From the NCBI GenBank assembly GCA_950097015.1, contig CATNEN010000033.1:682001-746000 (forward strand): a stretch of DNA of 64,000 bases, read 5' to 3'. This document shows positions 1-22,692 of the stretch, piece by piece. The position numbers and the translations under genes were made by a program. The notes under the pieces are model-generated. The model was not told the origin of the DNA. It searched no databases and saw only the letters and a program-made list of their open reading frames with translations. Position 1 is the stretch's first letter; every line of letters starts with the position of its first letter. This stretch comes from Macrostomum hystrix (Eukaryota; Animalia; Platyhelminthes).

Positions 1-313
1 CTCAACGTCATCGTCGTGACAGTTGGATTTTTCCGCATCGTTTAGAGTTGGCCCTGATGATGATGTTGATGTAGGCATGGCGAGACAATGGGGGCAGTAT
101 TTAAAATGTTGAACTTGTTTTATTTACTTCATTAATTGTCCAAAGTTTCAACTGCATTGATTACATATTCCCAATCACATAAGATTATCAGCAAGCTTGT
201 TACCATAGACTAGCAATAGGGTTTTTAGTTGGTTACTTTACTAAGGTAAGTGGCGTAACTTATTTACACATTTTAGATTCTTAATTATTGTTTCAAATAA
301 AAAAAACTACAAC

Positions 314-772
314 ATGTCATCACTGGGTGGGCGGCACAATGGCGGAGATCGAGATCGAGATATCGACAGAGAGGATCACAACTCTGGCAACGACAAACCG
401 ATCTCGTGCCCTACCGTCAGTAGCAGCACAGATGTCGTGATTGGCACTGAGCGACGTCGACGAAGGCACAGCTCGGATAGTAGTTCAGACTCGGATTTTG
501 CTATTCTGCTTTCACGTCAACGTGTTCAGTACGTATTGCATCGTCCAGGTGTCGTGCGCATTTACAATCAGAGATTTGGAATTGTGAACGCCAATCCGAC
601 ACGTGATTTAGCCGGCCAATTGCAACTGCCGCAGCATGCGCAAGTGACCGATATACAGTCACCAATTATAAGCAGCAGCAGCAGCAACAGTAACAATGGC
701 GGCACTGGCACTGAAAGAGAGCGCGGCGATGCCAATCGTGCTGCAAATAACCCAGATTTGAATGACATGTAG
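314..772 (+). CDS. 152-aa orphan protein of element A (RRRRR basic patch, Ser/Asp-rich)
   Basis: ATG-to-stop ORF; intact 150-aa inverted paralogue at 17514-17966 with frame-preserving indels. Confidence 0.55.
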   Translation: MSSLGGRHNGGDRDRDIDREDHNSGNDKPISCPTVSSSTDVVIGTERRRRRHSSDSSSDSDFAILLSRQRVQYVLHRPGVVRIYNQRFGIVNANPTRDLAGQLQLPQHAQVTDIQSPIISSSSSNSNNGGTGTERERGDANRAANNPDLNDM

Positions 773-1285
773 CAATTGTTTTGTTAAGCACTGTTGCCAT
801 TGCTTATAATGAAATTAATTAACTGATTAATATAATTAGAAGTTTCATGTATTTGATTCATACATCAGAGTATTTAAAATCGACAGTTCATGATGCCTGC
901 AAATGTTTTAAAGTACTTTTATATACACTAGCTCTCGTTCACCTTCACGTGGTATATTCAAAGCATAAGAGTTTGCCGTCACTATTGACAATATATTGTC
1001 GCGTTTACCATTAATCATAATCAGACGACTGATGAGATCAGTCAGTAATAAAATATTAATACGCGAACACAGATGTGTGCAGGTAGTCAACCGGTAATTA
1101 TTAATACGGTTTTTATTAAATTTCACCAATACATATAGAGTATAAATATATATAGAATTTCATTGGTTGAACAAATAATCGTGCCATTCTACAATTAGTC
1201 TGATTTGCAAAGTCGCGAGAGCAAAAATAAACGTGTAAACTATAATACATAAAATTCTGCATATAAATTCTGTATTTTACAGCAT

Positions 1286-1666
1286 TCATTGTTCGATGTA
1301 CCAATAGCGAACTCCATGTATGATGAGCTGAAGTTCAGCTTGGGCTTCCTCTAAAAGCTCTAGCACTTCGATGATGTCTTGTGCTTCATCGTCTCTTACA
1401 CCAGTCACGGACAAGACAGCCTGATAGTCTTCTGCTGACCGGTGCTTTTGCAGCCATTGTTGAGTGCGCCGTAATAATAAACATAGCTCATTAGCGTTGT
1501 ACTCTGCATTTGGAACACCGCGTTGCAAACTAGGTAGCTGCTCGAAGCACCCTCGATGCGCTATGAACCGGCCAATGCAATCTATGCGACAGCTGAGAAA
1601 GAGTTGAAATACGCGCGGCTGAAGATACATTTGTACTAACTGCATCTGATCGGCAATTAACGACAT
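1286..1666 (-). CDS. 126-aa orphan protein, member of a new 126/139-aa family
   Basis: ORF conserved at 16620-17000 with substitutions but no stops; aligns by eye to the 139-aa ORFs at 6376 and 33062. Confidence 0.7.
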   Translation of the reverse strand: MSLIADQMQLVQMYLQPRVFQLFLSCRIDCIGRFIAHRGCFEQLPSLQRGVPNAEYNANELCLLLRRTQQWLQKHRSAEDYQAVLSVTGVRDDEAQDIIEVLELLEEAQAELQLIIHGVRYWYIEQ

Positions 1667-1954
1667 GTTCAGTCAGTTAGTAAATCAAGTAAAGCAAAAA
1701 ATAGTTTTGTTAAAAAAAATTCTAAACTTTAATCGTTTAATAAGAAGCGATATACTAATATTAATATTAATGCGATAAGAAGCCCCCATAGAGTATAATT
1801 TATCGAACACAGGTGAGTCAGTCCAGAGACAAATCAAATGAATACAGGCCAGTCTGGGTATTAAGAACAAGAAATCTTTCTCGGCCAAGAAATCAGCCCA
1901 CAACCAACGCCATACGGACAGAAGCTACAGGATAGCGAGCGACACAGCACGGAC

Positions 1955-2335
1955 ATGAGCAACAATAGCAACAAATTTCCCTCCTTCACCGCGGCGTTCC
2001 GGGAACACGTACTGGCCTCCGCTGCGGCCGAATTGGAAAGCGCATTGCGAGCAGCGATGGATGCAGCGACAGCAGTGGCGGCAGCGGAGGCCTGGACGCC
2101 GGGACGTCGCGGGAAGGAGGCCGAGATGGCTGCCGCTATGCGGCGGGTCCGGGCGGCCATGGTCCGCATGGCCCGGGCCCGCCGCATAGCGGCAGGGCTG
2201 GATCCTTATGTGAGTAGTAGATTTCGATTCCTTTCATTTGAATATTTATGAACACATATGCATGGTAACATCTGAGCTAACAAACTAAATGAAACCTAAA
2301 ACCCATCTTTCATCCCGCAGCCGGGTGTGCTATAA
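1955..2335 (+). CDS. Two-exon 89-aa Ala/Arg-rich orphan protein (exons 1955-2209, 2321-2335)
   Basis: Donor TAT|GTGAGT at 2210 and acceptor CCCGCAG|CCG at 2320 give the C-terminus ...LDPY-PGVL*. The same splice sites and PGVL* end are kept in the inverted copy. Confidence 0.55.
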
Positions 2336-2468
2336 TCAGTCCGACTATCTGGTGTGCTATAATCAGTCCGACTATCTGCCCAATCAGCCGCTGACTATCT
2401 GCCCAATCAGCCGCTGACTATCTGCCCAATCAGTCCCTGACTATCTGCCCAATCAGTCCCTGACAATC
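2324..2468. repeat. 27-bp duplication followed by a 23-bp minisatellite (CTGACTATCTGCCCAATCAGCCG, ~4 copies, each with CCAAT)
   Basis: Direct reading; absent from the inverted copy near 15990. Confidence 0.8.
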
Positions 2469-4056
2469 TTGCATTAATTCTGTTATTGTTTGTAAATAAA
2501 ATAAGCTTAAAATTGTTATTAAAATAGTTTCATAGTTCTCAAAATACATAACTTCTTATCTTGGTTATTTATTTTATCATTAAAATAATATGAACTGATT
2601 GTTGGTTATGTGGTGTACATTGGCGATGAGACTTACTACAATAACGACGTAATCGTAATCGATCAGTCTGGTATATAATTTCAAGTAAAGTTTATACAAG
2701 TTTCTCATGTAAGAAAATATTAATAAAAACGGATTCGTTTAAAAAAGTAAAGTACAAACAACGAATAAATTATTATACGCTTACGTCTTGCTAGATATGC
2801 CAAGATGCACTATTAAAACGTGCAGACTATAGGTATGTAGTGCATTAAATTGTGCGTATTTTACCAAAGACATATCTGCTTGGTACAGCTCGATTTTTTC
2901 GCGATTTTTTTTCTTCGTATCCACATTTTTTCTTTCGAAAATACAGTCAGACGTTTTTGGCCATAGACAAAAAAACGGCTGCATATAATTCATATTGTAT
3001 GCAGTATTTTTGCAAAAGATCTTTCAGTAGCGTGGCTATATCTATGGTATTTTCGCGAATATAGCCAGACATTTCATCTATAATTAGTATTTGCGCACTG
3101 CCAATTTTTTTTTCGACAAAGTAAGAAGGCTCTTATGGAAGACAGCATAGTCACACCGGACTGCTACGGTATTGTAGTGTATATAGTGACTCGGTGTGAC
3201 GGTTCGATGGTTCACATACTGCGACATGTCACATACTGGTTAATATCAATTTGCAATTTAACGTTGTACATCGCATAGCTGCTCGTGCCAATGTTAACTT
3301 GACGTTGTACGTCTGGTTAAATTCGCGCATTTTGCGCAACGCAAAATACAGCAGTACTTTGCATAGACGTACAATGTCGAGCTTAACATTGCCTATGCAA
3401 GTCTCAACCTCATGAGTGTTTCCTGGTATGTCCTCATTCTCCCACTGTCTTTCGACTATCTTTTGTATTTTTAAATGTTTCATACAGTTTTTGTATGCCA
3501 ATTTTATAAAAACGACTGCGACCAAGTGACTGTCCTTTCAAGCGCAGCTACAGTACATGTCAAATTAGCATTAATAAATAAATAATAAATATAAATAATT
3601 TAGTGTTTGTTATTTGTATAATCATTAATAGTACACAACTTCTTATCTTGTTTATTCTATCATTAAAATAATATGAACTGAACTGACTGGCGGTTATGCG
3701 GTGTACATTGGCGTTGAGACTTATTACAAGACCGACGTAATCGTAATCGATCAGTCTGAGATATTATGTTTGTATTTATACTGCGCAAAACCTGAGAATA
3801 ATGAAGTAGACTTAAAACTAAAATTTATGTAGTAGAAATAGACAGTAGTGGAATCAAATCGCATAAAGGTATATATTTTTTAGTTTATTCTTATATCAAC
3901 GTATATTAAATCAATCGATTAAATCAAGTACAGTCTGAATTTATTATAAGTGAGTCAGTCGATTATTCAGCAAGCCAGCCAGCCAGCCAATCAGCCAGTA
4001 GACAGACAAAGCAGCCCAATCTGAGTTGCACGCAGAGCCAATTGAATTGAATGAAA

Positions 4057-5565
4057 TCAATTGCCGCACAGACATTGTCGCGTCTTGATCAATCGGCCGT
4101 GTCTTGACACTGTCGTAGTCAATATATTGTGTGTGCATATACAATACGAGCGTCTAGATGCACGCAAAGCATCAGTCGCAGGTATAGTCGATTGCGATGA
4201 CTGCACATCACTTATTGACATTGCGACATCGTCGTCAAGGTCGGCGGTCAGAACCAATTCTGCTGCGGCATCGGCATCTCCTTGCGGCACTGTCACATCA
4301 GATAACTGTTCATCCGAATCGTTGTTGACATCAGCAATGATGATCTCCATTGCGACATCAAACATGTCATCGATGTGACTTGCTTCGGAATGGGCAGCGA
4401 AATCCGATCCAGCAGCAGCAGCAACACAATCCGTATTGGTAGACAGAAATTGCATAGCGGCAGGTTGCATCAAGTCGAGCAGAATCTGCGCCATTTCAAT
4501 GTCATCACCGTGACCGGATGATGTACCAATACACACTGACTGCGTGCTGACATTGGCTTCGATTGAAACATCGGTCACACCGTTTTGTGCACTGACACCA
4601 ACTGTCGCTGTTGTTACTCTTGGCGCACAGACAGGAATAAAAACAGGTAGCGGCACCGGAACGAAATACGGCACCTCGACAGTTGGAATCGGCAACATAG
4701 GCATCGCTGGTGATCCGATTGGCTCAATTTGCAACATTGGCATTGATGGCGATGGTACTGGCGAGTGATCCGATTGGATTGTTTCTGCTGCTGCTTCAAT
4801 CGCATTGTGATTAAGCGGAGTAGATGTACAAATTGGATGCCGGACTGATCCAATTGACACGCTGTCCGCTTGGCTCACATGTTCAGCAGGCTCGTCAGTA
4901 CTTGTTGCATAGATGATGCCTGATTCAGCTGCGCTATCTTCTATGATGATAGTTTCTGCTGGCTGCTCTGCTGCTGACTGCTCTGCTGCTGACTGCTCTG
5001 CTGATGGCTGCTCTGCTGCTGGCTGCTCTGCTGCTGGCTGCTCTGCTACGGGCTGCTCTGCTACTGGCTGCTCTGCTGCTGGCTGCTCTGCTGCTGGCAG
5101 TCGACGGGCAATGTAGCGCTCGTGCATATAGTCGACAATCTCGCCGACCACAGCTGGTAGTGGATCCAGTTGTTCAAGCTGGACCACTTCGCCCATTGCC
5201 GCTGCTCCCGCCACTGCCACTGGCTGAGCTGGTTGGCCACCGACGCGACGCTGCGGATTCCGCTTACATCTATATAGATGATGCAACATGTTGGACGTTA
5301 TTTTGTTGCAATGCGGACACGCTAGCACACGTCCACCGGCAGCGACATCCACACCAGCCCGCTGTAGTTGCAGCATCTTCCAGACGGCACTTCCACGCTC
5401 CTTAACCGACGCGAATAGCGATGGCCTTTGACCAACAGGTAGGACTGTCCAGTCAAATTCGGCATGGACAGCTTTATGCGCCTCTATAAAATGTCTTCGC
5501 ATCATATTGGCGCGGATTTGCTGGCCGCAGAAATGGCAGAAGCGGAGTCCGTTGTTGTCTTCCAT
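4057..5565 (-). CDS. 502-aa protein: bipartite zinc-finger N-terminus (CxxC..HF-x3-H; CPxCxK..H-x3-C), 9 AEQPx pentapeptide repeats, acidic tail
   Basis: Intact ORF. N-terminus is homologous to exon 1 of the ZnF-YR gene (FDW...K.xAVW...CPxC). Partial copies at 13461-14236 and 29216-30272. Confidence 0.75.
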   Translation of the reverse strand: MEDNNGLRFCHFCGQQIRANMMRRHFIEAHKAVHAEFDWTVLPVGQRPSLFASVKERGSAVWKMLQLQRAGVDVAAGGRVLACPHCNKITSNMLHHLYRCKRNPQRRVGGQPAQPVAVAGAAAMGEVVQLEQLDPLPAVVGEIVDYMHERYIARRLPAAEQPAAEQPVAEQPVAEQPAAEQPAAEQPSAEQSAAEQSAAEQPAETIIIEDSAAESGIIYATSTDEPAEHVSQADSVSIGSVRHPICTSTPLNHNAIEAAAETIQSDHSPVPSPSMPMLQIEPIGSPAMPMLPIPTVEVPYFVPVPLPVFIPVCAPRVTTATVGVSAQNGVTDVSIEANVSTQSVCIGTSSGHGDDIEMAQILLDLMQPAAMQFLSTNTDCVAAAAGSDFAAHSEASHIDDMFDVAMEIIIADVNNDSDEQLSDVTVPQGDADAAAELVLTADLDDDVAMSISDVQSSQSTIPATDALRASRRSYCICTHNILTTTVSRHGRLIKTRQCLCGN

Positions 5566-5764
5566 TGCAGCTTAAATATAGTCGTTCGCTGGCTAGCCTG
5601 CTGAATAATCGACAGAGTGGTCGTTGTGGCTGAATTTTAATTATCGATTTGCGTGCGCGCGCGCATATATTTACCTAGCACTGCTCATATCCTGTACAGA
5701 GCAGCAGTCAGACACATAGACATAGACAGGCATCGTCAACTGGGTCTAAGCTATTTCCATATAT

Positions 5765-6070
5765 AGTATTTTCGCGAAAATACTGATATGCTCTATAAAC
5801 AAAGGTAAGGGCAGTATTTTTGCAAAAGTTCTTGAAGTAGTGTGTGTGGCTACATCTTTGGTATTTTCGCGAAAATACTGCTATGCTATTAAACAAAGGT
5901 AGTTGGCGGTATTTTTGCAAAAGTTCTTAAAGTAGTGTGCATGATTACATCTTTGGTATTTTCGCGAAAATACTGCTATGCTATTAAACAAAGGTAGTTG
6001 GCGGTATTTTTGCAAAAGTTCTTAAAGTAGTGTGCATGGCTACATCTTATGATATTATCGCGAATGCAGA
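5765..6070. repeat. 95-bp palindrome-containing array (~3 units)
   Basis: GTATTTTCGCGAAAATAC at 5861 and 5956 (period 95), alternating with TTTTGCAAAA. Confidence 0.9.
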
Positions 6071-6375
6071 TACGCGGCGGTTGAAGACAATAAGAAGACA
6101 ATATTTTTGCGAAAGTACTTTAAGTATTCATGATGACTATATCTAATGGTAATCAATAACCAAATATGACTTGACTTCATTATATTTTATTATTATTCAT
6201 GCCGCGAATACAACTTGCAACAGGTTCACTCATGTATTTTTGCTTGAGCGAATTAATTGGGTTAAATAAATAGCTGGCATTAATTAAACGGCGAACAGGA
6301 AACTACAATTAGCTGTATTAGCTGTATTAAGTCTACCTAAAACTAGTGCTGCTACTGCTGCTGCTGCTGCTGCTG

Positions 6376-6795
6376 TTACTGCTCAATTCGATATCGGCGG
6401 CTCCGGAGCAACTCTCGCAGTCTAGCCCTTTGCTGTACGCCGCGCCAGTAGTCCAGGCCGTGTAGAATGTGCTGCAGCTCCAAACATGTGTCCTCCAGCA
6501 GGCCTAGCAGCTCGGCCAAGTCGAAGGCCTCGTTCTCTGTTAGGCAGGTCACCTCCAGGATGGTCTCGTAGCCCGCAGCTGTCTTGTGTTGTAGCAGCCA
6601 GTCCAGGAGGCTCTTCATCAGGGTGTGCAGCTGGGTGACGTTCAGCTCAGCAGTCGGGCAGTGGCGCTGCAGGCAGGTTAGCTGCTCCAATCGTCCTCGG
6701 TAAGTCAGGAACGGGGCCAGACAGGCGATGTCGCATCTGGCCAGGAGTGCCACGGTGGCCGGCGAGCCGAACAGCGCCACAGGATGCGTATTCAT
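6376..6795 (-). CDS. 139-aa orphan protein (126/139-aa family)
   Basis: GC-rich ORF in AT-rich context; nearly identical intact copy at 33062-33481; homologous to 1286-1666. Confidence 0.7.
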   Translation of the reverse strand: MNTHPVALFGSPATVALLARCDIACLAPFLTYRGRLEQLTCLQRHCPTAELNVTQLHTLMKSLLDWLLQHKTAAGYETILEVTCLTENEAFDLAELLGLLEDTCLELQHILHGLDYWRGVQQRARLRELLRSRRYRIEQ

Positions 6796-6894
6796 CGTGA
6801 GTTCTACACAACCAACAATGTCGTGAGTGCAACAGCAGCGCGTCTAACACTAGCAGAAGTAGAATTAGAATAGGAAGCAGAGTTCTAAATGGAA

Positions 6895-7745
6895 AGTAAA
6901 TACAGTATTTTCGCGAAGGTAAGGGCAGTATTTTTGCAAAAGTAGCGTGACTACATCTTATGGTATTTTCGCAAATGCAGATACGTATTCTCAGACAAAG
7001 TGACTTTTTACCATAGACAAATTTAGTGTATTTCTGTAAATTGCCAAAACTCACGAATGAGTTTTTTCGCGAAAAGACAATATGTACTATATTGAATACT
7101 TGTAAATGAAAAATAGTGTCTGTTTTTGCGAAAATACTGCTATGCTATTAAACAAAGGTAGTTGGCGGTATTTTTGCAAAAGTTCTTAAAGTAGTGTGCA
7201 TGGCTACATATTATGGTATTTTCGCGAAAATACTGCTATCCTATTAAACGCAGGTAGTAAAGGTAGTTTGCGGTATTTTTGCAAAAGTTATTAAAGTAGT
7301 GTGCATGGCTACATCTTAAGGTATTTTCGCGAAAATACTGTTATGCTATTAAACACAGGTAGTTGGCGGTATTTTTGCAAAAGTTATTAATTAAGTAGGT
7401 TATATGCGTGGCTATATCTTAAGGTATTTTCGCGAAAATACTGCTATGCTATTAAACAAAGGTAGTTGGCGGTATTTTTGCAAAAGTTCTTAAAGTAGTG
7501 TGCATGGCTACATATTATGGTATTTTCGCGAAAATACTGCTATCCTATTAAACGCAGGTAGTAAAGGTAGTTTGCGGTATTTTTGCAAAAGTTATTAAAG
7601 TAGTGTGCATGGCTACATCTTAAGGTATTTTCGCGAAAATACTGTTATGCTATTAAACACAGGTAGTTGGCGGTATTTTTGCAAAAGTTCTTAAAGTAGT
7701 GTGCATGGCTACATATTATGGTATTTTCGCGAATGTAGATACGTA
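6895..7745. repeat. 95-bp palindrome-containing array (~7-8 units, some degenerate)
   Basis: Repeated GGTATTTTCGCGAAAATACTG...GGTATTTTTGCAAAAGT units. Confidence 0.9.
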
Positions 7746-8136
7746 TTCTCAGACAAAGTGACTTGTACTTTTTTACCATCGACAAATTTAGTATATTTCT
7801 CTGCTAATTGTCAATAATCACGAATGATTTTTTCGTGTATCTTCGGCTTTTAAGAAAACGAGAATAGTTTAATCTCAGTTTAATCAGATGATAATCAAAT
7901 GATTTCATTTGTCAATTTATTTAATTACTAACGAAATAATCACAGTGTTGACAATCATTAGCATCTTAACAATATATAAGAGAGCAACAAACAGAACATA
8001 TGAGATTCTCGGTTGTAAAGGGACGGGTATTAGTGGGGGTATCACAATTGACACAATTGATAATTGATAATAGTTTGGCAAATCAGACAATCAGCACATA
8101 TAAAGTCAGGTGACACGACTGGGACAATATGAGCAT

Positions 8137-11100
8137 TCAGATGTCCAGTCTAGTTCTCGAACTGATCAGGCGCCCAGATCGCGTCCTGTATTCCGTTCGA
8201 CGAACCACGAGTAGCTCAGAATCCGAGCTGGTCTCATTGTCATTGCTGACGTGCTGTTGTTCACCATCATCACCTTCTTCGTCGATATCGTCGTGAACGT
8301 TGCCTTGTCCAGCCGATGCTCCAAACATCGGCGGTTGACTAAGACTGCGTCGTCTAGACGATGTAGACGAAATAGGCGATGGTGTTGCTGAATCGATGGC
8401 CGGCTTTGTCGACTCGGTGTTGTCCGTTGTTGAACATCTAGGACTAACCGTAGCGGGTCGCATTGTCGACATTCGAGGTCGCTTCTTGTCAGTGGCCTTG
8501 CAAATGGACGACCGTCGAGTGCGTCGCTTGCGTGTGCGTTGACTATGTGGCATCACAATGTCATCAGCAGGTAGAGGAGATGCAGCCGATGAATTGGTTG
8601 CGTCCAGATCAACGCTACAGGCGGCAGAGCGACGACGCTTCGTGTCGTTTTCGGCTGTTGGATGTCGTTGATGTCGACGATCAAGTGGCCGATTGTGACA
8701 GAATGTCTCGAAGCATCCTCTGACGTCGTCGGCGACCATCAGATTGGCCTGCTGTTTGGCCAGGCGTCCATACGCATTCACGACACAGTTGCGCGATGTG
8801 TCGTACAGAGGCACCAGCTGGTCTAGCTTGTCGGGATGCGCGTGCACATAGGCCGACAGTACATTTCGACGACCATCGCCCATGCGATAGGGCCGATCGA
8901 TGACCAACTCGGCGCCCTGCTTGACAAGCGTGCTGAAACTTGTCGAGTCACGCTGCTTGCCACGATGCGTAGGAAACAGCAGACATTTGCCTGGCCTGAC
9001 ATGGATGTTGCACTCGGCGAAGTATGGCAATAGAAAGTTGTCTATCCATTGCAGTAGACATTCGCCGACTTTGCGTGGCGCAGTCCAGCTTGCACCTTTA
9101 CCACGACCGCCCTTTTTGTGTGCCACTTCGGTAGGCGGCAGGACTGTGACAATGGTGGAGGACGTTGATACGCCGCTATTGAGTGCAGCATCCAAATAGC
9201 AACGCCGGATCGCGACCCAAGGACGTAGTCGATTGGCATGGACAATTGCTGCACAGAAGAAGGCCAGTTCACGCGTGATCGGCATAATAAATGTATTCCA
9301 TTTGCCGACGACGTTGGCCATTCGACGTGCACATTGTCCAATGCGACCCCAGTAGCCCTTCACGGGTAGATGAGACCACGAATGTTTGGCGACCATATCA
9401 ATCAGGCAGTCTAGCCGGTTGTGAATGATGCGCCATTCGTCAGCGGTCAGGAACTTATCCGTGTAGGACAGCTGGCGTTCGTCATCGCGCAGGTGATAGA
9501 TATTCTCTTGCCGCTGACGAATCAATCGAATGCAAGCCTGTACATGTTAAAGGGTTATGAAAGAGAAAGTACATACAGTAGCTTCTACAATTGTTCGTGA
9601 TATATCAACTAACATAGTATACAATATGCGACACAACAACACTGCTCACCATGATTGATTCGATGCGGCTAGTCAACAGACCAGATACTGCAGTCTGATG
9701 ATAGAGAATACCATCTTTGCGCGGGTCAGGACAGGCAGGCAATTCTGACGCGGCCTTGACAATGTCGGCATGCACGTTGGCAAACAATCCATCTGGTGGC
9801 GAGGTCAATTGGAACGCGTTCATAACACTAGGAGCACCGAAGTCGTTGTTGGCTGCTAGAAACTTCTTCGCGCCGCTCAATATGTTATGAAGCTCGTTCA
9901 TTCGCTGTCCAACAGTCGATGGTTTCCAGATATGGCGCTTCACCATCTCGTCCAGATCGAATTGGATGCGCGCTGGATTTATGAACCACATCTCGACTGT
10001 GACATTGATTGCGTGTAGGAGACGACTAGTTGTAGCATGATAGTTCCGCTGGATTGCTTTCCTACGGCTAACATGCGATGCGTTCTCTTCTACACAGCAA
10101 TGACCCTTGAACCAGATGTCGCCGACATTGTCTAGTTGCTTGTACATGTGTTCAGATGCAACGTGGTAGTCTGGGCCGTCGAAAACAACAAGCCGAGACG
10201 TCTTGTGCCTCCGTTGCAATACAAGCTCCTCTTCACTGACAGAATCATCAGTATTTTCCACGTCAGATTTAGAGGTCTGAGTCTCTGCTTGTCGATGACT
10301 GACAGCATTGGTGACTCCGACCGGAACATAGTCTGACGTATACTGGAGAATTGCTTCTGTCAGATTGACCAGATTCTGCAAGCTAGTACACACGCGCGGA
10401 TGCTCAGCGTTGTGGGCTTTCTGCAGAATCTCGTTGAGGCCGGCCGCATTCAGACGCAGTCCATTGATAAATTCTGTTTGACAGGAAAGTTATAAATATT
10501 TGTTGATTATTTTTTGTCTTTATGTGTAAATTTAAAAATTTAAAGGCATGTACAACAATATTTTAGACCACTTACTGATCGCTGCCACATTGTCGTTGGC
10601 ATTATTGAATTCTGGCATCGTACTCGTTTCGTTTTGCAGTCGCTCGATGTCGTGACTGACAATATCGGCCGTGTAAGATGGTCCGGCACGATCGAAACTA
10701 GCCAACACCGGTGCTACTAAAGTAGACGGTATGACAGACGATGCACTGTTGGTAATGCGTACAGCAGTGGACTGTCCAGCAGAAGACGATCCCGCAGACG
10801 ACGCACACACGACAATAGGCAGCTCAATTTTTGCACCCGCGTCAATCGAATCAGACGAAGAATCGTCGCTCTCACCTGACGAAAGGGTTGCATTTGCTGC
10901 CTCTGTAATTGCCGGTTTACTTTTACAAGGTCGTGCGATATGCTTGCTGAGTTGCCGCACACATTTACCACAATATGGACAATGCTTGTATAGTACATCA
11001 ATTCCCTTCCGACGGAGTATGAGGACCTTCCATACAGCATTTGCCTTGGCATCAGCCGACGCATTCGCTGCGGCTCGCATATCTGCAGGTATGTCGCTCC

Positions 11101-11197
11101 AGTCGAAACTCGAAATGAAATCAGAATGTTGTCTAGCAAAGTGCCTTCTGATATTCTTCTTCGCAACTGCGGCATTGCAGACAGGGCAGTCGTCCAT
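8137..11197 (-). CDS. Three-exon 948-aa zinc-finger / tyrosine-recombinase-like protein (exons 11197-10576, 10473-9650, 9537-8137)
   Basis: Intron 10474-10575 (GTAAGT...AAACAG) and intron 9538-9649 (GTGAGC...GTACAG) join three ORFs in frame: 622+824+1401=2847 nt. Exon 3 has YR-like motifs NRLR (R), EVAHKK (K), GDGRR (xxxR) and YDTSRNCVVNAY (Y nine residues after the H/W position). Confidence 0.72.
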
Positions 11198-11756
11198 TTC
11201 GTTCGCTTCGATTTGCTTATATGACAGACAGAAAAAATTGTTCGATTTATTACCGAGCGCGCTCGGCTACCGCTGTTATAACGCTTCGACTGTACTCACG
11301 GTTTGTCCCATGAACTAAAAATTTGCACTTGTCTATGGGCCTATTATGCTAAATAAATTTAACGTTGCTACTATATTGTCTACTCATAGTAGAGTAGGTA
11401 GTTTCGAACAGAAAATGAACAAAAACACGAATAATTATTTGATTTCTGAATGTCTATCTATATGTTGAAAAATCACTTAAAGAAGTGTTGATTATTCAAG
11501 AGTTATTTTCGCGAAAGTACATATATATTCTCAAACAAAGGTTGATGCAGTCTTTTTGCGAAAATACTTTTGTGTTAATATGATTACTGTTTCTAGTGGT
11601 ATTTTCGCGAAAAGACATGTGTCCTATATAAAAGTAAAGGCATTATCAAAAGAAGGTAAATGCCGTAAACGTTAATATTAATGGGGGTTCACAAAAAGTA
11701 GTTTGGTAGTAATTAGTAGTAAATTATTAGCAGATTTTTTAAATTGAGAAAAATGC

Positions 11757-11834
11757 GTAGTGCCGACTGGGATTCGAACCCGAGCCACTGCTACTAAAAA
11801 TGAATGCTTTAGACCTGCATGCCAGATCACTTGC
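11757..11834 (-). pseudogene. tRNA-derived sequence (A-box/B-box-like), copy 1
   Basis: Minus strand reads TGGCATGCAGGTCTAAAGC...GGGTTCGAATCCCAG; acceptor and anticodon stems pair poorly. Confidence 0.45.
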
Positions 11835-12321
11835 AAAAGATTGGTGTGTTATCTGGTTATTTATATTGATGAGTCACTTTTCGCGAAAAAAAAACTGTAT
11901 AGCATAATATCGAACTCATAATATATTCAACGATGCTATATTGTCTACTCATAGTAGAGTAGGTAGTTTCGAACAGAAAATGAACAAAAACACGAATAAT
12001 TATTTGATTTCTGAATGTCTATCTATATGTTGAAAAATCACTTAAAGAAGTGTTGATTATTCAAGAGTTATTTTCGCGAAAGTACATATATATTCTCAAA
12101 CAAAGGTTGATGCAGTCTTTTTGCGAAAATACTTTTGTGTTAATATGATTACTGTTTCTAGTGGTATTTTCGCGAAAAGACATGTGTCCTATATAAAAGT
12201 AAAGGCATTATCAAAAGAAGGTAAATGCCGTAAACGTTAATATTAATGGGGGTTCACAAAAAGTAGTTTGGTAGTAATTAGTAGTAAATTATTAGCAGAT
12301 TTTTTAAATTGAGAAAAATGC

Positions 12322-12399
12322 GTAGTGCCGACTGGGATTCGAACCCGAGCCACTGCTACTAAAAATGAATGCTTTAGACCTGCATGCCAGATCACTTGC
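12322..12399 (-). pseudogene. tRNA-derived sequence (A-box/B-box-like), copy 2
   Basis: Duplicate of 11757-11834 within the 565-bp repeat. Confidence 0.45.
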
Positions 12400-12984
12400 A
12401 AATGATTGGTGTGTTATATGGTTATTTATATTGATGAGTCACTTTTGGCGAAAAAACTGTAACGAAAATACGGATACGTATTTCATAATTCAGTCTAACA
12501 GAACAATAAGATTTATTGAGGGAATAGAGATAGTACTGCTGATTACTATTATTGTTTGTATTTTCGCGAAATACAGATACGTATTCAAACGAAGGTAGAA
12601 CAGTATTTTTTGCAAAAGCACTTTAAGTACTTTAGTTACATTAGATGATGTTTTCGCAAAATGCTTAAAGTGAAGTAGCAATGTTAATACAGGGCAAGGT
12701 ATTTTCGCGAAAGTACAATGAAATATGGTGCATGAAGGACACAGTGATATATATTAGCACTTTCGCAAACACGACTACATGCTCCGCAGTGCTCGATTGC
12801 GAAAAGACATAGGCTTAGCTGTTCTAATTATAGAAATACACTACGGAGATAAAAAAAAAGGTCATTTGGTATATGTGTCCGTATTTTCGCGAAATGACCA
12901 CCTACGGTGTTCTATTTTTAGAAATACACTAGGGAGATCAAAAAAAAGGTCATTCAGCCTTTTTGCGATACGCATGCATGCACT

Positions 12985-13140
12985 TCCTTCCGGAAGATGT
13001 TGCTTCCTATGGATTTACATTGAGGCAATCCCTTCCGGAAGATTTTGCGTCCTATTGATTTACATAGAAGCAATTCCTTCCGGAAGATTTTGCGTCCTAT
13101 TGATTTACATAGAAGCAATTCCTTCCGGAAGATTTTGCCA
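12985..13140. repeat. 41-bp minisatellite (CCTTCCGGAAG core, ~3.7 units)
   Basis: Direct reading; palindromic CTTCCGGAAG core. Confidence 0.8.
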
Positions 13141-13460
13141 ATGCAGTTAATATGCTAGAGCCATAGACGGTTGGGTCTGGAGTGTGGCCTTGAGGGCCAT
13201 GAGTAGCGGAATTCCCAATTGTTCATACGGAAATCCTAAATTTGGGTAGGGGTCTGCGAGCAAAATCTTCCGACTGTTGGGGTCTGCAGGCATTTCCTTC
13301 CGATGCATATTTTGTCTCCACCACCATCTTAAAGCGGGTTAGCAGATGTGGGCATGCAGGCAGAAATAGCTAGACGGCCAAAATATTACATAACAAAATA
13401 TTACATAACACAAAATAATCAGTTTGTTGGGGTCCGCAGGACATTATCATCAATGCATAT

Positions 13461-14236
13461 TTTGTACATCTACTCCGCTTAATCACAATGCGATTGAAGC
13501 AGCAGCAGAAACAATCCAATCGGATCACTCGCCAGTACCATCGCCATCAATGCCAATGTTGCAAATTGAGCCAATCGGATCACCAGCGATGCCTATGTTG
13601 CCGATTCCAACTGTCGAGGTGCCGTATTTCGTTCCGGTGCCGCTACCTGTTTTTATTCCTGTCTGTGCGCCAAGAGTAACAACAGCGACAGTTGGTGTCA
13701 GTGCACAAAACGGTGTGACCGATGTTTCCATCGAAGCCAATGTCAGCACGCAGTCAGTGTGTATTGGTACATCATCCGGTCACGGTGATGACATTGAAAT
13801 GGCGCAGATTCTGCTCGACTTGATGCAACCTGCCGCTATGCAATTTCTGTCTACCAATACGGATTGTGTTGCTGCTGCTGCTGGATCGGATTTCGCTGCC
13901 CATTCCGAAGCAAGTCACATCGATGATATGTTTGATGTCGCAATGGAGATCATCATTGCTGATGTCAACAACGATTCTGATGAACAGCTATCTGATGTGA
14001 CAGTGCCGCAAGGAGATGCCGATGCCGCAGCAAAATTGGTTCTGACCGCCGACCTTGACGACGATGTCGCAATGTCAATAAGTGATGTGCAGTCATCGCA
14101 ATCGACTATACCTGCGACTGATGCTTTGCATGCATCTAGACGCTCGTATTGTATATGCACACACAATATATTGACTACGACAGTGTCAAGACACGGCCGA
14201 TTGATCAAGACGCGACAATGTCTGTGCGGTAATTGA
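13461..14236 (+). pseudogene. 5'-truncated copy of the 502-aa ZnF gene (C-terminal ~258 codons)
   Basis: Near-identical to the reverse complement of 4057-4832; homology starts abruptly at 13461. Confidence 0.85.
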
Positions 14237-14303
14237 TTTCATTCAATTCAATTGGCTCGGCGTGCAACTCAGATTGGGCTGCTTTGTCTGTCTACTGGCT
14301 GAT

Positions 14304-14334
<31 letters not shown>

Positions 14335-15020
14335 ATAATCGACTCACTCACTTATAATAAATTCAGACTGAACTTGATTTAATCGATTGACTTAATATAC
14401 GTTGATATAAGAATAAACTAAAAAATATAAACTTTTACGCGATTTGATTCTAAGCGATTTGATTCCACTACTGTCTATTCTTATTACATCAATTTTAGTT
14501 TTAAGTCTACTTCATTATTCTCAGGTTTTGCGCAATATAAATACAAACATAATATCTCAGACTGATCGATTACGATTACGTCGGTCTTGTAATAAGTCTC
14601 AACGCCAATGTAAACCGCATAACCGCCAGTCAGTTCAGTTCATATTATTTTAATGATAGAATAAACAAGATAAGAAGTTGTGTACTATTAACAATTAAAC
14701 AAATTACAAACACTAAATTATTTTTGTTGATTATTTATTTATATTTTGAAACGGGTGACCGGGTGCAGAGCAATGTGACGGTTCGTGGTTCACATACTGC
14801 GACATGTCACATAGCCAGCAGATATCTTAGCAGCTTCCGTTGAAGGACGCGAAAATACATTATACTGTTCAACAAGTATGTGACATGTCGCAGTATGTGA
14901 ACCACTGAACCGTCACACCGAATCACTATACACTACAATACCATAGCAGTCCGGTATGTTTATATTTTGAAACGCGGGGATGTCCGGGTGCAGAGCAGGG
15001 CTGGCTAATGCTCACATTAT

Positions 15021-15092
15021 CATCGGGCCGTACGTTAGCCAGATGAAATCTTTCAGAAAAAAACTGAAATCTGGCTAACGTACGGCCCGATG
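15021..15092. repeat. Hairpin/mini-MITE with 24-bp perfect inverted repeats
   Basis: CATCGGGCCGTACGTTAGCCAGAT (15021-15044) and its reverse complement (15069-15092). Confidence 0.85.
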
Positions 15093-15995
15093 GTAACGAT
15101 GGCTAATGATACTGTCTTCCACAAGAGCCTTCTTACCTTTTTACCACTGGCACAATATGCACAGATCTCAAGTAGTCAACGATCATAGTCGTTTTGACTT
15201 AAGAATACGTATGTACTTTCGCGAAAAAGTTTTTGGCAGTGCGCAAATACTAATTATAGATGAAATGTCTGGCTATATTCGCGAAAATACCATAGATATG
15301 GCCACGCTACTTAAAGAACTTTTGCAAAAATACTGCATACAATATGAATTATATGCAGCCGTTTTTTGTGTCTACGGCCAAAAACATCTGACTGTATTTT
15401 CGAAAGAAAAATTTGGATGCGAAGAACATAAAAAATAGCGAAAAATCGAGCTGTACCAAGCAGACATGTCTTTGGTAAAATACGCACAATTTAATGCACT
15501 ACATACCTATAGTCTGCACGTTTTAAAAGTTCATCTTGTAACATCTTATATCTAGCGATACGAAAGTGTATAATAATTTATTCGTCGTTTGTACTTTACT
15601 TTTTTAAACTTATCCAACTAACTTATATGGCTGAATAATGTACAATAATGTACAATAATGTACAAGGAATAATGCACCTCGAAAATTCGTTTCTTTTTGC
15701 TTGTCAGTTAGTGAGTTCTTATTGTCGCACAAATGTTAATAATTGACGTAATAAAATAACAGAACGATTCATAACACGTATTGACGAGATTAGCATGAAT
15801 AATTTAATCATTCAATCATTTAATCAGTTTTATTGTTTTGTTGTATTTATGTATCCGTTTCAGTATCAGTATCAGAGATGTATGACCAATCAGTATTGAC
15901 AGTAAGATAACAAAGGAGGTAAAGTTATCAAAGAGAAACGATTGAATGTCTCAGATCGGCTGGTGTTGTTGGTGTTGAACCAGGTTCTCTGGTTC

Positions 15996-16378
15996 TCATA
16001 GGACACCCGGCTGCGGGATGAAAGATGGGTTTTAGGTTTCATTTATTTTGTTAGGTTTCCTTTAGTAGCTTAGATGTTACAATGCAGATGTGTTAATAAA
16101 TATTCAAATGAAAGGAATCAAAATCTACTACTCACATATGGATCCAGCCCTGCCGCTATACGACGGGCCCGGGCCATGCGTAACATGGCCGCCCGGACCC
16201 GCCGTATAGCGGCTGTCATATTTTCTTCAGCCCGGCGCCGTTCCGGCGTCCAGGCTTCCGCCGCCGCTACCTCCATTGCCACCTCCATGGTTGATCTCAT
16301 TGCGTCTTCTAACTCGGCGGCGGTTGACGCCAGTACGTAGTGCCGGAACGCCGCCGGGAATAATGAGAAAGTAGACAT
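15996..16378 (-). CDS. Two-exon 85-aa paralogue of the 1955-2335 gene (exons 16378-16136, 16010-15996)
   Basis: Same donor and acceptor as the 1955 copy; ORF intact. Confidence 0.55.
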
Positions 16379-16619
16379 AGCTGCTGTTGTTGTGCTGTTG
16401 TTGCTGCTTTGCTTGCGAAGTTTGGTTGTGGGCTGATTTCTTGGCCGATAAAAAATTTCTTGTTCTTAATACCCTGGCTGGCCTGTATTCATTGGATTTG
16501 TCTGTGGACTGACTAATCTGTGTTCGAAAAAATATACTCTATGTGGGCTTTGATTAAAGTTTAGAATTTTTTTAGACAAAACTATTTTTTGCTTTACTTG
16601 ATTTACTAACTGACTGAAC

Positions 16620-17000
16620 ATGTCGTTAATTGCCGATCAGATGCAGTTAGTACAAATGTATCTTCACCCGCACATATTTCAACTCTTTCTCAGCTGTCGC
16701 ATAGATTGCATTGGCCGGTTCATAGCGCATCGAGGGTGCTTCGAGCAGCTACCTAGTTTGCAGTGCGGTGTTCCAAATGCTGAGTATAGCGCTAATGAGT
16801 TATGCTTATTATTACGGCGCACTCAAGAATGGCTGCAACAGCACCGGTCAGCAGAAGACTATATGGCTGTCTTGTTCGTGACTGGTATAAGAGAGGATGA
16901 AGCACAAGACATCATCGAAGTGCTAGAGCTTTTTGAGGACGCCCAAGCTGAACTCCAGCTCATCATACATGGAGTTCGCTACTGGTACATCGAACAATGA
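16620..17000 (+). CDS. 126-aa orphan protein (second copy)
   Basis: Intact paralogue of 1286-1666. Confidence 0.7.
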   Translation: MSLIADQMQLVQMYLHPHIFQLFLSCRIDCIGRFIAHRGCFEQLPSLQCGVPNAEYSANELCLLLRRTQEWLQQHRSAEDYMAVLFVTGIREDEAQDIIEVLELFEDAQAELQLIIHGVRYWYIEQ

Positions 17001-17513
17001 ATGCTGTAAAATACAGAATTTATACAGAATTTTATGTATTATAGTTTACACGTTTATTTTTGCTCTCACGACTTTGCAAATCAGACTAATTGTAGAATAG
17101 CACGATTATTTGCTCAATCAATGAAATTCTACATATATTTATACTTTATATATATTTATTGGTGAAATTTAATAATAACAGTATTAATAATAACCGATTG
17201 ACTAGCTGCACACATCTGTGTTCGCGTATTAATATTTTATTACTGACTGATCTCATCAGTCATCTGATTATGATTAATGGTGAACGCGACAATATATTGT
17301 CAATAGAGACGGCAAACTGTCTTATGCTTTGAATATTACCACGTAGGTGAACGAGAGCTAGTGTATGTAAAAGTAGTTTAAAACATTTGCAGGCAGCATG
17401 AACTGTCAACTTTGAATACTTAGATGTGTTAATCAAATACCTACTTTTAATTATATTATTCAGTTAATTAATTTCATTATAACTAATGGCAACAGTGCTT
17501 AACAAAAGAATTG

Positions 17514-17966
17514 CTACATGTCATTCAAATCTGGGTTATTAGCAGCACGATTGGCATCGCCGCGCTCTCTTTCAGTGCCAGTGCCGCCATTGTTGATGCT
17601 GCTGCTACTACTTACAATTGGTGACTGTATATCGGTCACTTGCGCATGCTGCGGCAGTTGCAATTGGCCGGCTAAATCACGTGTCGGATTGGCGTTCACA
17701 ATAGAAAATCTCTGATTGTAAATGCGCACGACACCTGGACGATGCAATACGTACTGAACACGTTGACGTGAAGGCAGAATAGCAAAATCGGAGTCTGAAC
17801 TACTATCCGAGCTGTGCCTTCGTCGACGTCGCTCAGTGCCAATCACGACATCCGTGCTGCTACTGACGGTAGGGCACGAGATCGGTTTGTCGTTGCCAGA
17901 GTTGTGATCCTCTCTGTCGATATCTCGTTGATCTCCGCCATTGTGCCGCCCACCCAGGGATGACAT
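17514..17966 (-). CDS. 150-aa orphan protein (second copy of 314-772)
   Basis: Intact paralogue. Confidence 0.55.
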   Translation of the reverse strand: MSSLGGRHNGGDQRDIDREDHNSGNDKPISCPTVSSSTDVVIGTERRRRRHSSDSSSDSDFAILPSRQRVQYVLHRPGVVRIYNQRFSIVNANPTRDLAGQLQLPQHAQVTDIQSPIVSSSSSINNGGTGTERERGDANRAANNPDLNDM

Positions 17967-18200
17967 GTTGTAGTTTTTTTATTTGAAACAATAATTAAGA
18001 ATCTAAAATGTGTAAATAAGTTACGCCACTTACCTTAGTAAAGTAACCAACTAAAAACCCTATTTCTAGTCTATGGTAACAAGATTGCTGATAATCTTAT
18101 GTGATTGGGAATATGTAATCAATGCAGTTGAAACTTTGGACAATTAATGAAGTAAATAAAACAAGTTCAACATTTTAAATACTGCCCCCATTGTCTCGCC

Positions 18201-18854
18201 ATGCCTACATCAACATCATCATCAGGGCCAACTCTAAACGATGCGGAAAAATCCAACTGTCACGACGATGACGTTGAGCTGAATGAAGAGCCAGGCTATG
18301 ATGACTACGGGTATGATGAAACATACAATTCAACATACAGTTTTGTATTCGGCCTGGCAGACGACCATTTGTTATACGCCGTAGCTGAAGAGGTCGAAGC
18401 GGCGATGGCAGCCAATTGCTTAGACTCAGCTGACGACGAGCTTTTATATGCCGCAGCTGAAGAGGCGGAGGCGTCAGCAGCAGCGGCAGCGATGGCAGCC
18501 AGTAGCTGCTTATTTGACCCAGCTGATGACGAGCTTTTGTATGCCGCAGCTGAAGAGGCGGAGGCGTCAGCAGCAGCGGCAGCGATGGCAGCCAGTAGCT
18601 GCTTGTTTGACCCAGCTGATGACGAGCTTTTGTATGCAGCAGCTGAAGAGGCGGAGGCGTCAGCAGCAGCGGCAGCGATGGCAGCCAGTAGCTGTTTATT
18701 TGACCCAGCTGATGACGAGCTTTTGTATGCCGCAGCTGAAGAGGCGGAGGCGTCAGCAGCAGCGGCAGCGATGGCAGCCAGTAGCTGTTTATTTGACCCA
18801 GCTGACGACTGCCTATTGTATGCCGCAGCTGAAGAGGCGGAGGCATACGTTTGA
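18201..18854 (+). CDS. 217-aa acidic protein with 31-aa repeats (DPADDELLYAAAEEAEASAAAAAMAASSCLF; 93-bp units, ~4.7 copies)
   Basis: ATG-initiated ORF, repeat period a multiple of 3; its 5' end is duplicated at 78-1 on the minus strand. Confidence 0.55.
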   Translation: MPTSTSSSGPTLNDAEKSNCHDDDVELNEEPGYDDYGYDETYNSTYSFVFGLADDHLLYAVAEEVEAAMAANCLDSADDELLYAAAEEAEASAAAAAMAASSCLFDPADDELLYAAAEEAEASAAAAAMAASSCLFDPADDELLYAAAEEAEASAAAAAMAASSCLFDPADDELLYAAAEEAEASAAAAAMAASSCLFDPADDCLLYAAAEEAEAYV

Positions 18855-20825: not shown

Positions 20826-21080
20826 TACAAGCTGGGTTAATATAATAGGCCCTTTAATTAGTCTTTGTATATATAATAGGCCCTGCAATTAGTATTTGTA
20901 TATATAATAGGCCCTTTAATTAGTCTTTGTATATATAATAGGCCCTGCAATTAGTATTTGTATATATAATAGGCCCTTTAATTAGTCTTTGTATATATAA
21001 TAGGCCCTGCAATTAGTATTTGTATATATAATAGGCCCTTTAATTAGTCTTTGTATATATAATAGGCCCTGCTATTAGTA
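20826..21080. repeat. 41-bp minisatellite (TATATAATAGGCCC...), resumes at 23356 after the Helitron
   Basis: Alternating GGCCCTTTAATTAG / GGCCCTGCAATTAG units. Confidence 0.9.
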
Positions 21081-21642
21081 TCTATATATATATAAAAGTG
21101 AAAACTCTGTCTGTCTGTCTGTCTGTGTGTGTGCAACCTTTTGTCTTTATAGACGCCGAAACCGCTCAACCAAATCGCACCAAACTTTGCACATACCTAA
21201 AACCACCTACGCTGAGTGCAATAGGCAACTCAAATTCCCGAAAAATCATTTCCTTCCTGCTCAAAAGTGCAAAAAACTGCTCAAAAATCGTCAAAAAATC
21301 ACTCAATTCGACATATCGTCGCCCCACTTTGTCAGATTTTCTCCAAATTTGATCCACTTACACTTTACATGTTTTCCAACAATGCTGTCAATTTTGAACA
21401 TCTCTACTCAATCCAGAGCAAAGCTGCATCATCTCAAAGTGAGTCACTTTTTGTTTTCCGAGGACAGCCACCCCAACTCCCCTCCGCCACTCTGCGGGCC
21501 AAATTTTATTACAGCCACCCCCTCCCTTCCCCGGGCGCCGAAGCCCCAGACTGTACATTGTATTTCAAGCCGTGAATGTACACAGCCCAAACCCCTAGAC
21601 TGTCTACTGGCCCCCAAGCAGCACTGAGACTGAGTGCGGTGA

Positions 21643-22692
21643 GTGCGGTGGCGTCCCAGTGCGCAGGGCTCTCCGGTCGATATTTCTCTCCAGCCAGCCT
21701 GGGATAGAAGAAAGAGAGAGGCTGGCGATCAACTGATGGGTGGTGTCACTCTGCTGCTGTCTGGAGACTTTAGACAGACGCTGCCTGTGATTCCGCATGG
21801 CACTCCTGCTGATGAGATTAATGCTTGCCTAAAATCATCTCACCTGTGGCCATCGGTTGTGAAGTTGCACCTACGAACAAACATGAGAGCTACAATTCAA
21901 GGAGACGAAACAGCTCATGAGTTCTCTGCCAATCTATTGCGAATCGGCAATGGTCTGCTGGAGATTAGCACCGAGGATGGGCAGTCATCGATCGCTACAA
22001 TCGGAACCATTGTGCAGTCAGTGCAGGAGCTCAAGGCAAAAGTTTACCCGAACCTGATGGTTCGATATGCTGACGTTGACTGGCTGTCAGAGAGGGCAAT
22101 TCTGTGTCCTAGAAATGATGCCGCCAACGAAATTAACTACCAACTGCTTCAGGAGTTGCCAGGTGCAGTTTTCACCTACAAGTCAATTGATACAACGTTG
22201 ACTGATGACACCGCTGTGGAGTATCCTGTTGAGTTTCTGAACTCTCTAGATCCTCCTGGAACTCCATCGCACAACTTGCAGCTGAAAGTTGGGGCACCAA
22301 TTATGCTCCTCCGCAACCTGAATGCGCCAAGGCTGTGTAACGGCACCAGACTGATAGTCAGGCGGCTCTTCCCACACGTGATTGAGGCCACGATAATGAC
22401 TGGATCTGGCAGAGGAGAGTCTGTGTTCGTTCCCCGGATTCCAATTATCCCCACGGACCTGCCATTTCAGTTCAAGCGACTGCAGTTCCCTGTGAGAGTG
22501 TGCTTTGCGATGACTATTAACAAGGCTCAGGGACAGTCGCTGAAGGTGGCTGGCATCAACCTGGAGACTCCTTGCTTCTCGCATGGGCAGCTTTATGTCG
22601 CCTGCTCCCGTGTTGGAAATCCAGCTGGCCTATTCATTTTCGCACCAAGGGGAAGAACGAAGAATGTGGTGTATCCCCAGGCCTTGAGGTGA
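21643..22692 (+). CDS. Helitron PIF1-like helicase, C-terminal fragment (no Rep domain)
   Basis: Motifs GDFRQTLPV, LKVGAPIMLLRNL..RLCNGTRL, FAMTINKAQGQSL, FSHGQLYVACSRV. Confidence 0.9.
   Translation: MRWRPSAQGSPVDISLQPAWDRRKREAGDQLMGGVTLLLSGDFRQTLPVIPHGTPADEINACLKSSHLWPSVVKLHLRTNMRATIQGDETAHEFSANLLRIGNGLLEISTEDGQSSIATIGTIVQSVQELKAKVYPNLMVRYADVDWLSERAILCPRNDAANEINYQLLQELPGAVFTYKSIDTTLTDDTAVEYPVEFLNSLDPPGTPSHNLQLKVGAPIMLLRNLNAPRLCNGTRLIVRRLFPHVIEATIMTGSGRGESVFVPRIPIIPTDLPFQFKRLQFPVRVCFAMTINKAQGQSLKVAGINLETPCFSHGQLYVACSRVGNPAGLFIFAPRGRTKNVVYPQALR

Follow-up and report, generated by a model that had tools for sequence, protein, structure and literature searches.

Three open reading frames (ORFs) on the minus strand of a 64,000-nucleotide (nt) stretch of the Macrostomum hystrix genome (Platyhelminthes; GenBank assembly GCA_950097015.1, contig CATNEN010000033.1, positions 682,001 to 746,000 of the forward strand; hereafter, the window, numbered from its first nucleotide) raise the question of whether an animal can encode a tyrosine recombinase in which both canonical active-site histidines are substituted. 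An initial annotation, made from the sequence alone, had joined these ORFs into one zinc-finger protein of 948 amino acids (aa) and had placed it on a divergent branch of the superfamily of tyrosine recombinases, topoisomerase IB and telomere resolvases. The reading that we favor, with moderate confidence, is that the locus is a macrostomid three-exon gene for a protein combining zinc fingers with a tyrosine recombinase fold, and that this protein is the recombinase of a Crypton-type selfish or multicopy DNA unit.

Structure and family of the three-exon gene

The ORFs of the initial annotation (10532-11197, 9605-10393 and 8137-9525) are all present on the minus strand, and reading any of them beyond the end of its exon leads to a stop codon within the intron. 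Exons 11197-10576, 10473-9650 and 9537-8137, when joined across 2 GT-AG introns, give 2847 nt, that is, 948 codons and a stop, with 0 internal stops. The parts of the gene and of its product are as follows (G+C, guanine-plus-cytosine content):

10576-11197, minus strand: exon 1, aa 1-207 plus 1 nt; start codon ATG at 11197-11195; two-finger zinc module and Ser/Ala-rich linker
10474-10575, minus strand: intron 1, 102 nt, GTAAGT...CAG, 23.5% G+C; boundaries without homology support
9650-10473, minus strand: exon 2, aa 208-482; C-terminal two thirds (approximately aa 320-482) conserved with Macrostomum lignano; helical
9538-9649, minus strand: intron 2, 112 nt, GTGAGC...CAG, 34.8% G+C; junction spanned by M. 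lignano P0001
8137-9537, minus strand: exon 3, aa 483-948 and stop codon TGA at 8139-8137
10913-11197, minus strand: N-terminal zinc-finger module, aa 1-95; common to M. lignano P0008 and to zinc-finger-only ORFs
8698-9537, minus strand: modelled region, aa 483-762; helices followed by a beta hairpin and five C-terminal helices; predicted tyrosine recombinase-like catalytic fold
8140-8688, minus strand: C-terminal tail, aa 766-948; low complexity, rich in Ser, Arg, Thr and Asp; ratio of non-synonymous to synonymous substitution rates (Ka/Ks) 0.65

The proposed splicing into an intact protein was confirmed by the open frame, by the AT-rich introns, set in exons of 49-54% G+C, and by the collinearity of the spliced protein over its full length with M. 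lignano A0A1I8G604 (P0008, 1084 aa; BLASTP expectation (E) value 6e-128). Junction 2 is spanned unbroken by the M. lignano fragment P0001, in which RIDAVYAQLGRVSRQQDNRYHL matches RIESIM/ACIRLIRQRQENIYHL. The linker that contains junction 1 is poorly conserved, and 4 further GT-AG pairs in it also leave the frame open; the 102-nt intron was therefore chosen by its consensus donor and splice-site quality, not by homology. Databases were searched with the pieces of the spliced protein separately, and the whole was compared in local scripts only. Judged from its sequence, the three-exon gene is genuine and under constraint.

The N-terminal module consists of finger 1 (C4-x2-C7-x12-H20-x4-H24) and finger 2 (C73-x2-C76-x8-H85-x5-C91), with a conserved FDW...AVWK linker between them. 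It recurs in M. lignano P0008 and in the zinc-finger-only ORFs at 4057-5565 and 29190-30272, where identity to the module of the recombinase-like gene is 32-34%, and it matches C2H2/BED-like families below threshold only. The helical region encoded by exon 2 may be a core-binding domain; the N-terminal half of the model of P0008 residues 500-960 is poor, with a predicted local distance difference test (pLDDT) score of 30-55. The tail contains 2 basic clusters, KRRR at 782 and RKRR at 818, which look like nuclear localisation signals.

With the exon-3 core as query, phmmer retrieved 4 out of 1.84 billion representative proteins, namely, 2 M. lignano clusters (together 7 UniProt entries), 1 sequence from the Logan assembly SRR31628394 and 1 from the JGI metagenome 3300040801. 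The sole addition from a profile search with the family alignment was a duplicate of the Logan sequence, and a word-indexed search with P0008 residues 500-960, whose length filter does not admit the 279-aa fragment that represents the cluster, gave no match. At least 7 UniProt entries of M. lignano belong to the family (P0001, P0002 and P0005-P0009). Pfam, PHROGs and NCBIfam gave no family match for any exon, for the divergent paralogue described below or for the full-length M. lignano protein; DUF3504, DUF3435, PF00589 and Crypton-type profiles did not match the exons, the paralogue or P0008 in Pfam-type scans; and PDB held no sequence match, either by phmmer or by profile. Since metagenome and viral contigs searched for related loci yielded none, nothing points to a viral origin. 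Exact look-ups of window ORFs and of P0008 returned no contig, and a search of the available literature found no description of the family. As far as sequence comparison can tell, the family is very small and lineage-restricted, comprising M. lignano, 2 unplaced sequencing sources and this window. UniProt names M. lignano fragments of the family "Ras-GEF domain-containing protein," and Pfam finds no domain in the full-length member; the name is probably an annotation artefact.

Predicted fold and candidate active site

An AlphaFold2 model of aa 483-762, built from a 7-row alignment, has a mean pLDDT of 73.7 and a predicted template modelling (pTM) score of 0.71. When this model was compared with PDB using Foldseek, tyrosine recombinases accounted for 50/50 of the top matches (best E value 3.3e-3, probability up to 1.00, template modelling (TM) score 0.3-0.4), with S. 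aureus integrase 3nkh, XerA, Cre, XerD, XerH, lambda Int and YopR among them. The top matches in BFVD were nearly all phage integrases, VLF-1 proteins of baculoviruses and nudiviruses, and algal-virus proteins, with one viral topoisomerase I. In a separate model of the M. lignano homologue (residues 500-960), the catalytic half again matches XerD, XerH and XerA. Weaker matches of the latter model include bacterial and poxvirus topoisomerase IB (2f4q and 1a41; probability at most 0.54) and TelK (2v6e; rank 17, probability 0.12), both below Xer and Cre, as well as a small number of unrelated proteins with very low probabilities, and neither topoisomerase IB nor TelK is among the top 50 PDB matches of the window protein's own model. 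Although each score is marginal alone, the matches are uniform across 2 libraries and 2 models, and we consider it largely right that the C-terminal half has a predicted tyrosine recombinase (DNA breaking-rejoining) fold, too divergent for any sequence profile. The superfamily proposed in the initial annotation is supported, with the correction that topoisomerase IB and telomere resolvases are matched less well than recombinases, and in these models the protein family looks nearer to simple recombinases than to either.

Does this fold carry the residues needed for catalysis? The candidates are located as follows:

9229-9231, minus strand: R585, candidate Arg-I; motif R-x-x-P-W; kept in 4/4 covering lineages; codon checked
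9115-9117, minus strand: K623, candidate hairpin Lys; motif E-V-x-x-K; invariant alignment column
8866-8877, minus strand: D703-G704-R705-R706, candidate box II equivalent; RR doublet invariant; starts model helix 221-233
8770-8799, minus strand: T729-S730...Y738; T-S-x7-Y kept in 4/4 covering lineages; Y738 ends model helix 249-256

The catalytic set put forward in the initial annotation, R (NRLR), K (EVAHK), R (GDGRR) and Y (TSRNCVVNAY), stands: R585, K623, R705-R706, T729-S730 and Y738 are invariant in each lineage of the family alignment that covers them, and their conservation spans 4-5 divergent lineages with 23-44% identity. Retention of R, K, R and Y at such divergence argues for catalysis. 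On the model, the order of the elements is canonical, with the Arg after a helix, the Lys in a hairpin, the RR doublet opening a helix and the Tyr closing one. More specifically (in model numbering), R585 directly follows the long helix 76-99 and is one residue ahead of the short helix 104-107, and K623 lies between strands 128-133 and 149-154, with low pLDDT at 142-145. Comparisons with Cre, lambda Int and a 7-integrase profile using hhalign remained below 1% probability, and their local alignments, which are collinear, served only as weak evidence of which residues correspond: R585 falls on Cre R173 in a non-significant alignment, and in weak alignments to lambda Int, D703 is paired with H308, R706 with R311, T729 with H333 and Y738 with Y342. 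Taken with the model, R585, K623, R705-R706, T729 and Y738 appear to occupy the positions of Arg-I, the hairpin Lys, Arg-II, His/Trp-III and the Tyr nucleophile, respectively.

Arg-II could be either R705 or R706; if the weak alignment to lambda Int is followed, it is R706, and because of this placement the His-I position is probably D703 rather than the Gly named in the initial annotation. The annotation was right that both His positions are substituted, with T729 at position III, 9 residues before Y738, which equals the canonical spacing from His/Trp to Tyr. The 948-aa protein reads D-G-R-R in place of H-x-x-R. Family members differ at the position of D703 (D, D, H, T, D), the paralogue in the window having H-W-R-R, that is, canonical H-x-x-R. 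At position III, Thr is present in 4/4 covering lineages, and none has His or Trp there, which makes this Thr a family-wide trait.

The protein would thus resemble simple tyrosine recombinases (Cre, XerC/D/A/H and phage integrases; PF00589 class) in its predicted catalytic-domain fold, in the order of the active-site elements and in the 9-residue spacing to the Tyr. Unlike them, it has Asp at His-I, R-x-x-P-W for R-x-x-E/D and the family-wide Thr at III, and the family has an extra invariant Arg beside Arg-II. Furthermore, it shows no detectable sequence similarity to these enzymes and is a eukaryotic, spliced, 948-aa protein that has a pair of zinc fingers at its N terminus and ends in a long tail. 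His-I is replaced by another residue in topoisomerase IB and in telomere resolvases. Topoisomerase IB and the telomere resolvases TelK, TelN and ResT would accordingly share with the window protein both the superfamily fold and a replaced His-I, but they keep His at position III, where the window family has Thr.

A mechanism can be proposed on this basis, in which the residue roles, as well as catalysis, substrate and mobility, are what we infer from conservation and the model. The zinc fingers and the middle region would position the protein on DNA, and nucleophilic attack by Y738 on the phosphodiester would yield a 3'-phosphotyrosyl intermediate. The scissile phosphate would be held by R585 and R706, together with R705, while K623 on the beta hairpin would protonate the leaving group, and D703 and T729 would replace the 2 histidines.

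Gene copies and surrounding repeats

The window contains 2 further loci related to the gene, which occupies 8137-11197 (copy 1):

35047-36616, minus strand: copy 2, a pseudogene; approximately 93% nucleotide identity to copy 1
24481-27263, plus strand: divergent paralogue; 25% core identity; three ORFs, GT-AG introns; 62% G+C; looks intact

Copy 2 is cut at its 5' end inside exon 2, has a stop codon in place of W633 and carries a frameshift in the tail. Between copies 1 and 2, the core has accumulated 18.5 synonymous and 8.5 non-synonymous changes, with a Ka/Ks of 0.14 (binomial p = 3e-6), and is under purifying selection; the corresponding value for the tail is 0.65. The paralogue keeps R, K, H-W-R-R, T-S and Y and groups with the Logan sequence; therefore, the family includes at least 2 old subfamilies, both of which are present in this genome. 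The subfamily-B homologue (L001 1-1772, from Logan SRR31628394, and L004) is continuous across the intron positions of the window paralogue. It has one in-frame stop ahead of the Lys motif and may be a transcript that retains an intron.

The gene lies in an 8.6-kb segment (4833-13460) between inverted arms and is surrounded by repeats:

1-4832, no strand assigned: left inverted arm; partner 13461-18278; identity 80-96%; cut by the window start
13461-18278, no strand assigned: right inverted arm; partner 1-4832
4057-5565, minus strand: zinc-finger-only ORF, 502 aa; two-finger module, then AEQP repeats; duplicated with the gene, second copy at 29190-30272
5766-7733, plus strand: 95/96-nt tandem arrays (5766-6064 and 7123-7733) downstream of the gene; each unit with the 16-bp palindrome TATTTTCGCGAAAATA
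11465-12629, plus strand: diverged copies of the 95/96-nt unit (70-79% identity) on the upstream side of the gene, oriented alike; they fall within a 521-bp tandem duplication

A unit consisting of the zinc-finger-only ORF, the 95/96-nt repeats, a small ORF (6376-6795, between the two downstream arrays) and the gene is duplicated at 29215-36616. The 2 copies of this unit are shifted in offset because a Tc1/mariner element (30372-31983; helix-turn-helix (HTH) and DDE_3), with 117-nt terminal inverted repeats and a transposase ORF split at 31254/31258, sits in the second. The inverted-repeat boundary at 4832 cuts through the zinc-finger-only ORF, of which a headless mirror copy is found at 13424-14236. 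No element ends or site-like sequences were detected at the edges of the duplication and of the inverted repeats, all of which are plain breakpoints without a shared site. Among 17 neighboring ORFs of the window (most of them of at least 150 aa), Pfam identified no reverse transcriptase or RNase H domain.

The perfect 16-bp palindrome in the repeat unit has 24 matches, where none is expected by chance. The 95/96-nt arrays are located at 5766-6064, 7123-7733, 32080-32762 and 33884-34626, with half-unit palindromes TATTTTCGCGAAAATA and TTTTGCAAAA; going by their sequence, the units seem to be made up of a diverged dimer of approximately 48 nt, with one palindrome per half. One repeat unit contains a perfect 30-bp palindrome (32074-32103). 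A perfect 38-bp palindrome (27515-27552) and a hairpin with 44-nt arms (27755-27871), both with a GTGCGCGCAC core, are found 250-600 bp downstream of the stop codon of the paralogue.

Elsewhere in the window, a second, unrelated inverted duplication (43983-46078 and 51576-53672; 2.1-kb arms, 99% identity) brackets approximately 5.5 kb, including an oxysterol-binding-protein exon (50410-51069). The small ORFs form a family (126-139 aa; 6376-6795, 1286-1666 and 16620-17000) without a Pfam match that alternates with zinc-finger genes and repeat arrays and may represent exons of an unannotated gene. A Pif1-type helicase fragment (21643-22692), possibly a Helitron remnant, is preceded by a 31-nt tandem array (20840-21092), and a 29-nt tandem array (62898-64000; at least 33 copies, 95% identity) runs off the right window end. 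An FHA-PHD ORF in the window is 70-71% identical to 2 M. lignano proteins. Scanning the window for Rfam families and tRNA genes gave no match.

Possible roles of the protein

What could such a protein do in the flatworm genome? Of the roles considered, that of a recombinase of a selfish or multicopy unit is the most likely, a domesticated DNA-binding role ranks second, and palindrome resolution or segment flipping is a distant third. The favored role would be of the Crypton type, that is, recombinase-only, without a reverse transcriptase. It fits because an intact copy, a decayed copy and a divergent paralogue occur within 30 kb, in a repeat-rich region. As in Cryptons and DUF3504 derivatives, the locus combines a eukaryotic recombinase-like gene in multiple copies with no reverse transcriptase found and no obvious terminal inverted repeats of its own, and Cryptons, too, are hard to delimit (PMC3212892). 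Unlike Cryptons, the protein matches no DUF3504 or Crypton-type profile, and its equivalent of the R-H-R-Y tetrad reads R-D-R-Y; furthermore, a zinc-finger module is not among the Crypton features taken from PMC3212892. Within this single window, no short direct repeats or element ends were identified for the copies, whose edges are unrelated breakpoints. The DIRS, Ngaro, PAT and VIPER elements differ in carrying reverse transcriptase and RNase H next to the recombinase, neither of which was found among the 17 neighboring ORFs scanned.

A number of observations weigh against the Crypton-type reading. The structural evidence consists of Foldseek E values of only about 1e-3 and TM scores of 0.3-0.4, from a model based on an alignment of 7 rows, and no sequence method gave a significant result (none in Pfam, PHROGs, NCBIfam or PDB, and hhalign probabilities below 1%). 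Both canonical histidines are missing from the 948-aa protein, and the acidic residue three positions after Arg-I is replaced, so that R-x-x-P is found instead of R-x-x-E/D; together, these losses make reduced or lost activity possible. The gene model was read from DNA and protein homology. No element ends are recognizable, and the edges of the duplicated segments and inverted repeats are plain breakpoints, as in segmental duplication. The M. lignano genome is rich in duplicated genes, and several family entries in that species are therefore no proof of mobility.

Some of these observations would be accommodated by a domesticated or catalytically dead recombinase-derived protein, in which a nuclear protein specific to the lineage would use the fold to bind DNA or as a scaffold, without cutting DNA, as is the case for DUF3504 in ZMYM2-4, QRICH1 and KCTD1. 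Such a protein could dispense with the 2 histidines and with R-x-x-E/D; zinc fingers and a long basic/acidic low-complexity tail are typical of chromatin proteins; and purifying selection on the core and the lack of detectable transposon ends would be in line with a host gene, for which Crypton-derived host genes provide a precedent (PMC3212892). However, the domesticated Crypton-derived DUF3504 genes lost the Tyr and the second Arg (PMC3212892), both of which the window family keeps. Preservation of Arg-I, Lys, Arg-II and Tyr in all lineages at 23-44% identity is hard to explain without catalysis, and the window holds a decayed copy and a divergent paralogue in addition to the intact gene. 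We therefore consider domestication unlikely, though a serious competitor of the multicopy-unit recombinase.

A resolvase or invertase acting on the local palindromes or on the flanking inverted repeats, either cutting like a telomere resolvase or flipping the 8.6-kb segment in the manner of Flp on the 2-micron plasmid, is improbable. The setting is suggestive, with the gene between 4.8-kb inverted arms, 95-nt units with perfect 16-30-bp CGCG-centred palindromes on both sides of it (24 matches vs none expected) and the 38-bp palindrome and 44-nt-arm hairpin just downstream of the paralogue, and the M. lignano model does weakly match topoisomerase IB and TelK. Against this, Cre, Xer proteins and integrases dominate the top 50 of the window model, with TelK at rank 17 (probability 0.12) and topoisomerase IB at no more than 0.54 in the homologue model. 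The palindrome count reflects the tandem repeat, and variants of the unit break the symmetry one-sidedly, without compensation. Kilobase-scale inverted repeats are not peculiar to the recombinase-like gene, since the second, unrelated duplication with 2.1-kb arms (43983-53672) indicates that such repeats are common here, and the arm boundary runs through the zinc-finger-only ORF without any site-like sequence. Whereas Flp is likewise a eukaryotic tyrosine recombinase gene between inverted repeats, it is absent from the top structural matches, and the locus studied here is chromosomal, with diverged arms (80-96% identity) and arbitrary breakpoints. A connection with telomere resolvases, for which no linear replicon or hairpin end is in evidence, is speculative, as is one with the local palindromes. 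In the most far-reaching version, which we regard as a long shot, an animal-specific recombinase clade with a rebuilt active site (R, K, D/H-x-x-R after an extra Arg, Thr, Tyr) would act on the perfect CGCG-centred palindromes flanking its genes, either by breaking and rejoining hairpins, as a telomere resolvase does, or by flipping or amplifying the segment between kilobase-scale inverted repeats, as in the Flp/2-micron system, and would thereby generate the inverted duplications of this genome.

Finally, chance ORFs or a decaying pseudogene, as might be suspected of a model read from DNA and protein homology in a region rich in repeats and rearrangements, are very hard to reconcile with 948 open codons, collinearity with P0008 at an E value of 6e-128, a core Ka/Ks of 0.14 and AT-rich introns with consensus splice sites.

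If the protein is active, it would represent a eukaryotic, animal branch of tyrosine recombinases that works without either canonical histidine, which raises the question of how far the textbook active site is really required. The family also illustrates that recombinases can escape Pfam-type annotation, with 4 relatives in 1.84 billion proteins, and yet be recovered by structure prediction. If it is active and its site is found, the protein could become a new site-specific recombinase for a group of regenerating flatworm models, and a mobile or rearranging unit, should the gene drive one, would help to account for the repeat-rich, duplication-prone genomes of macrostomids.

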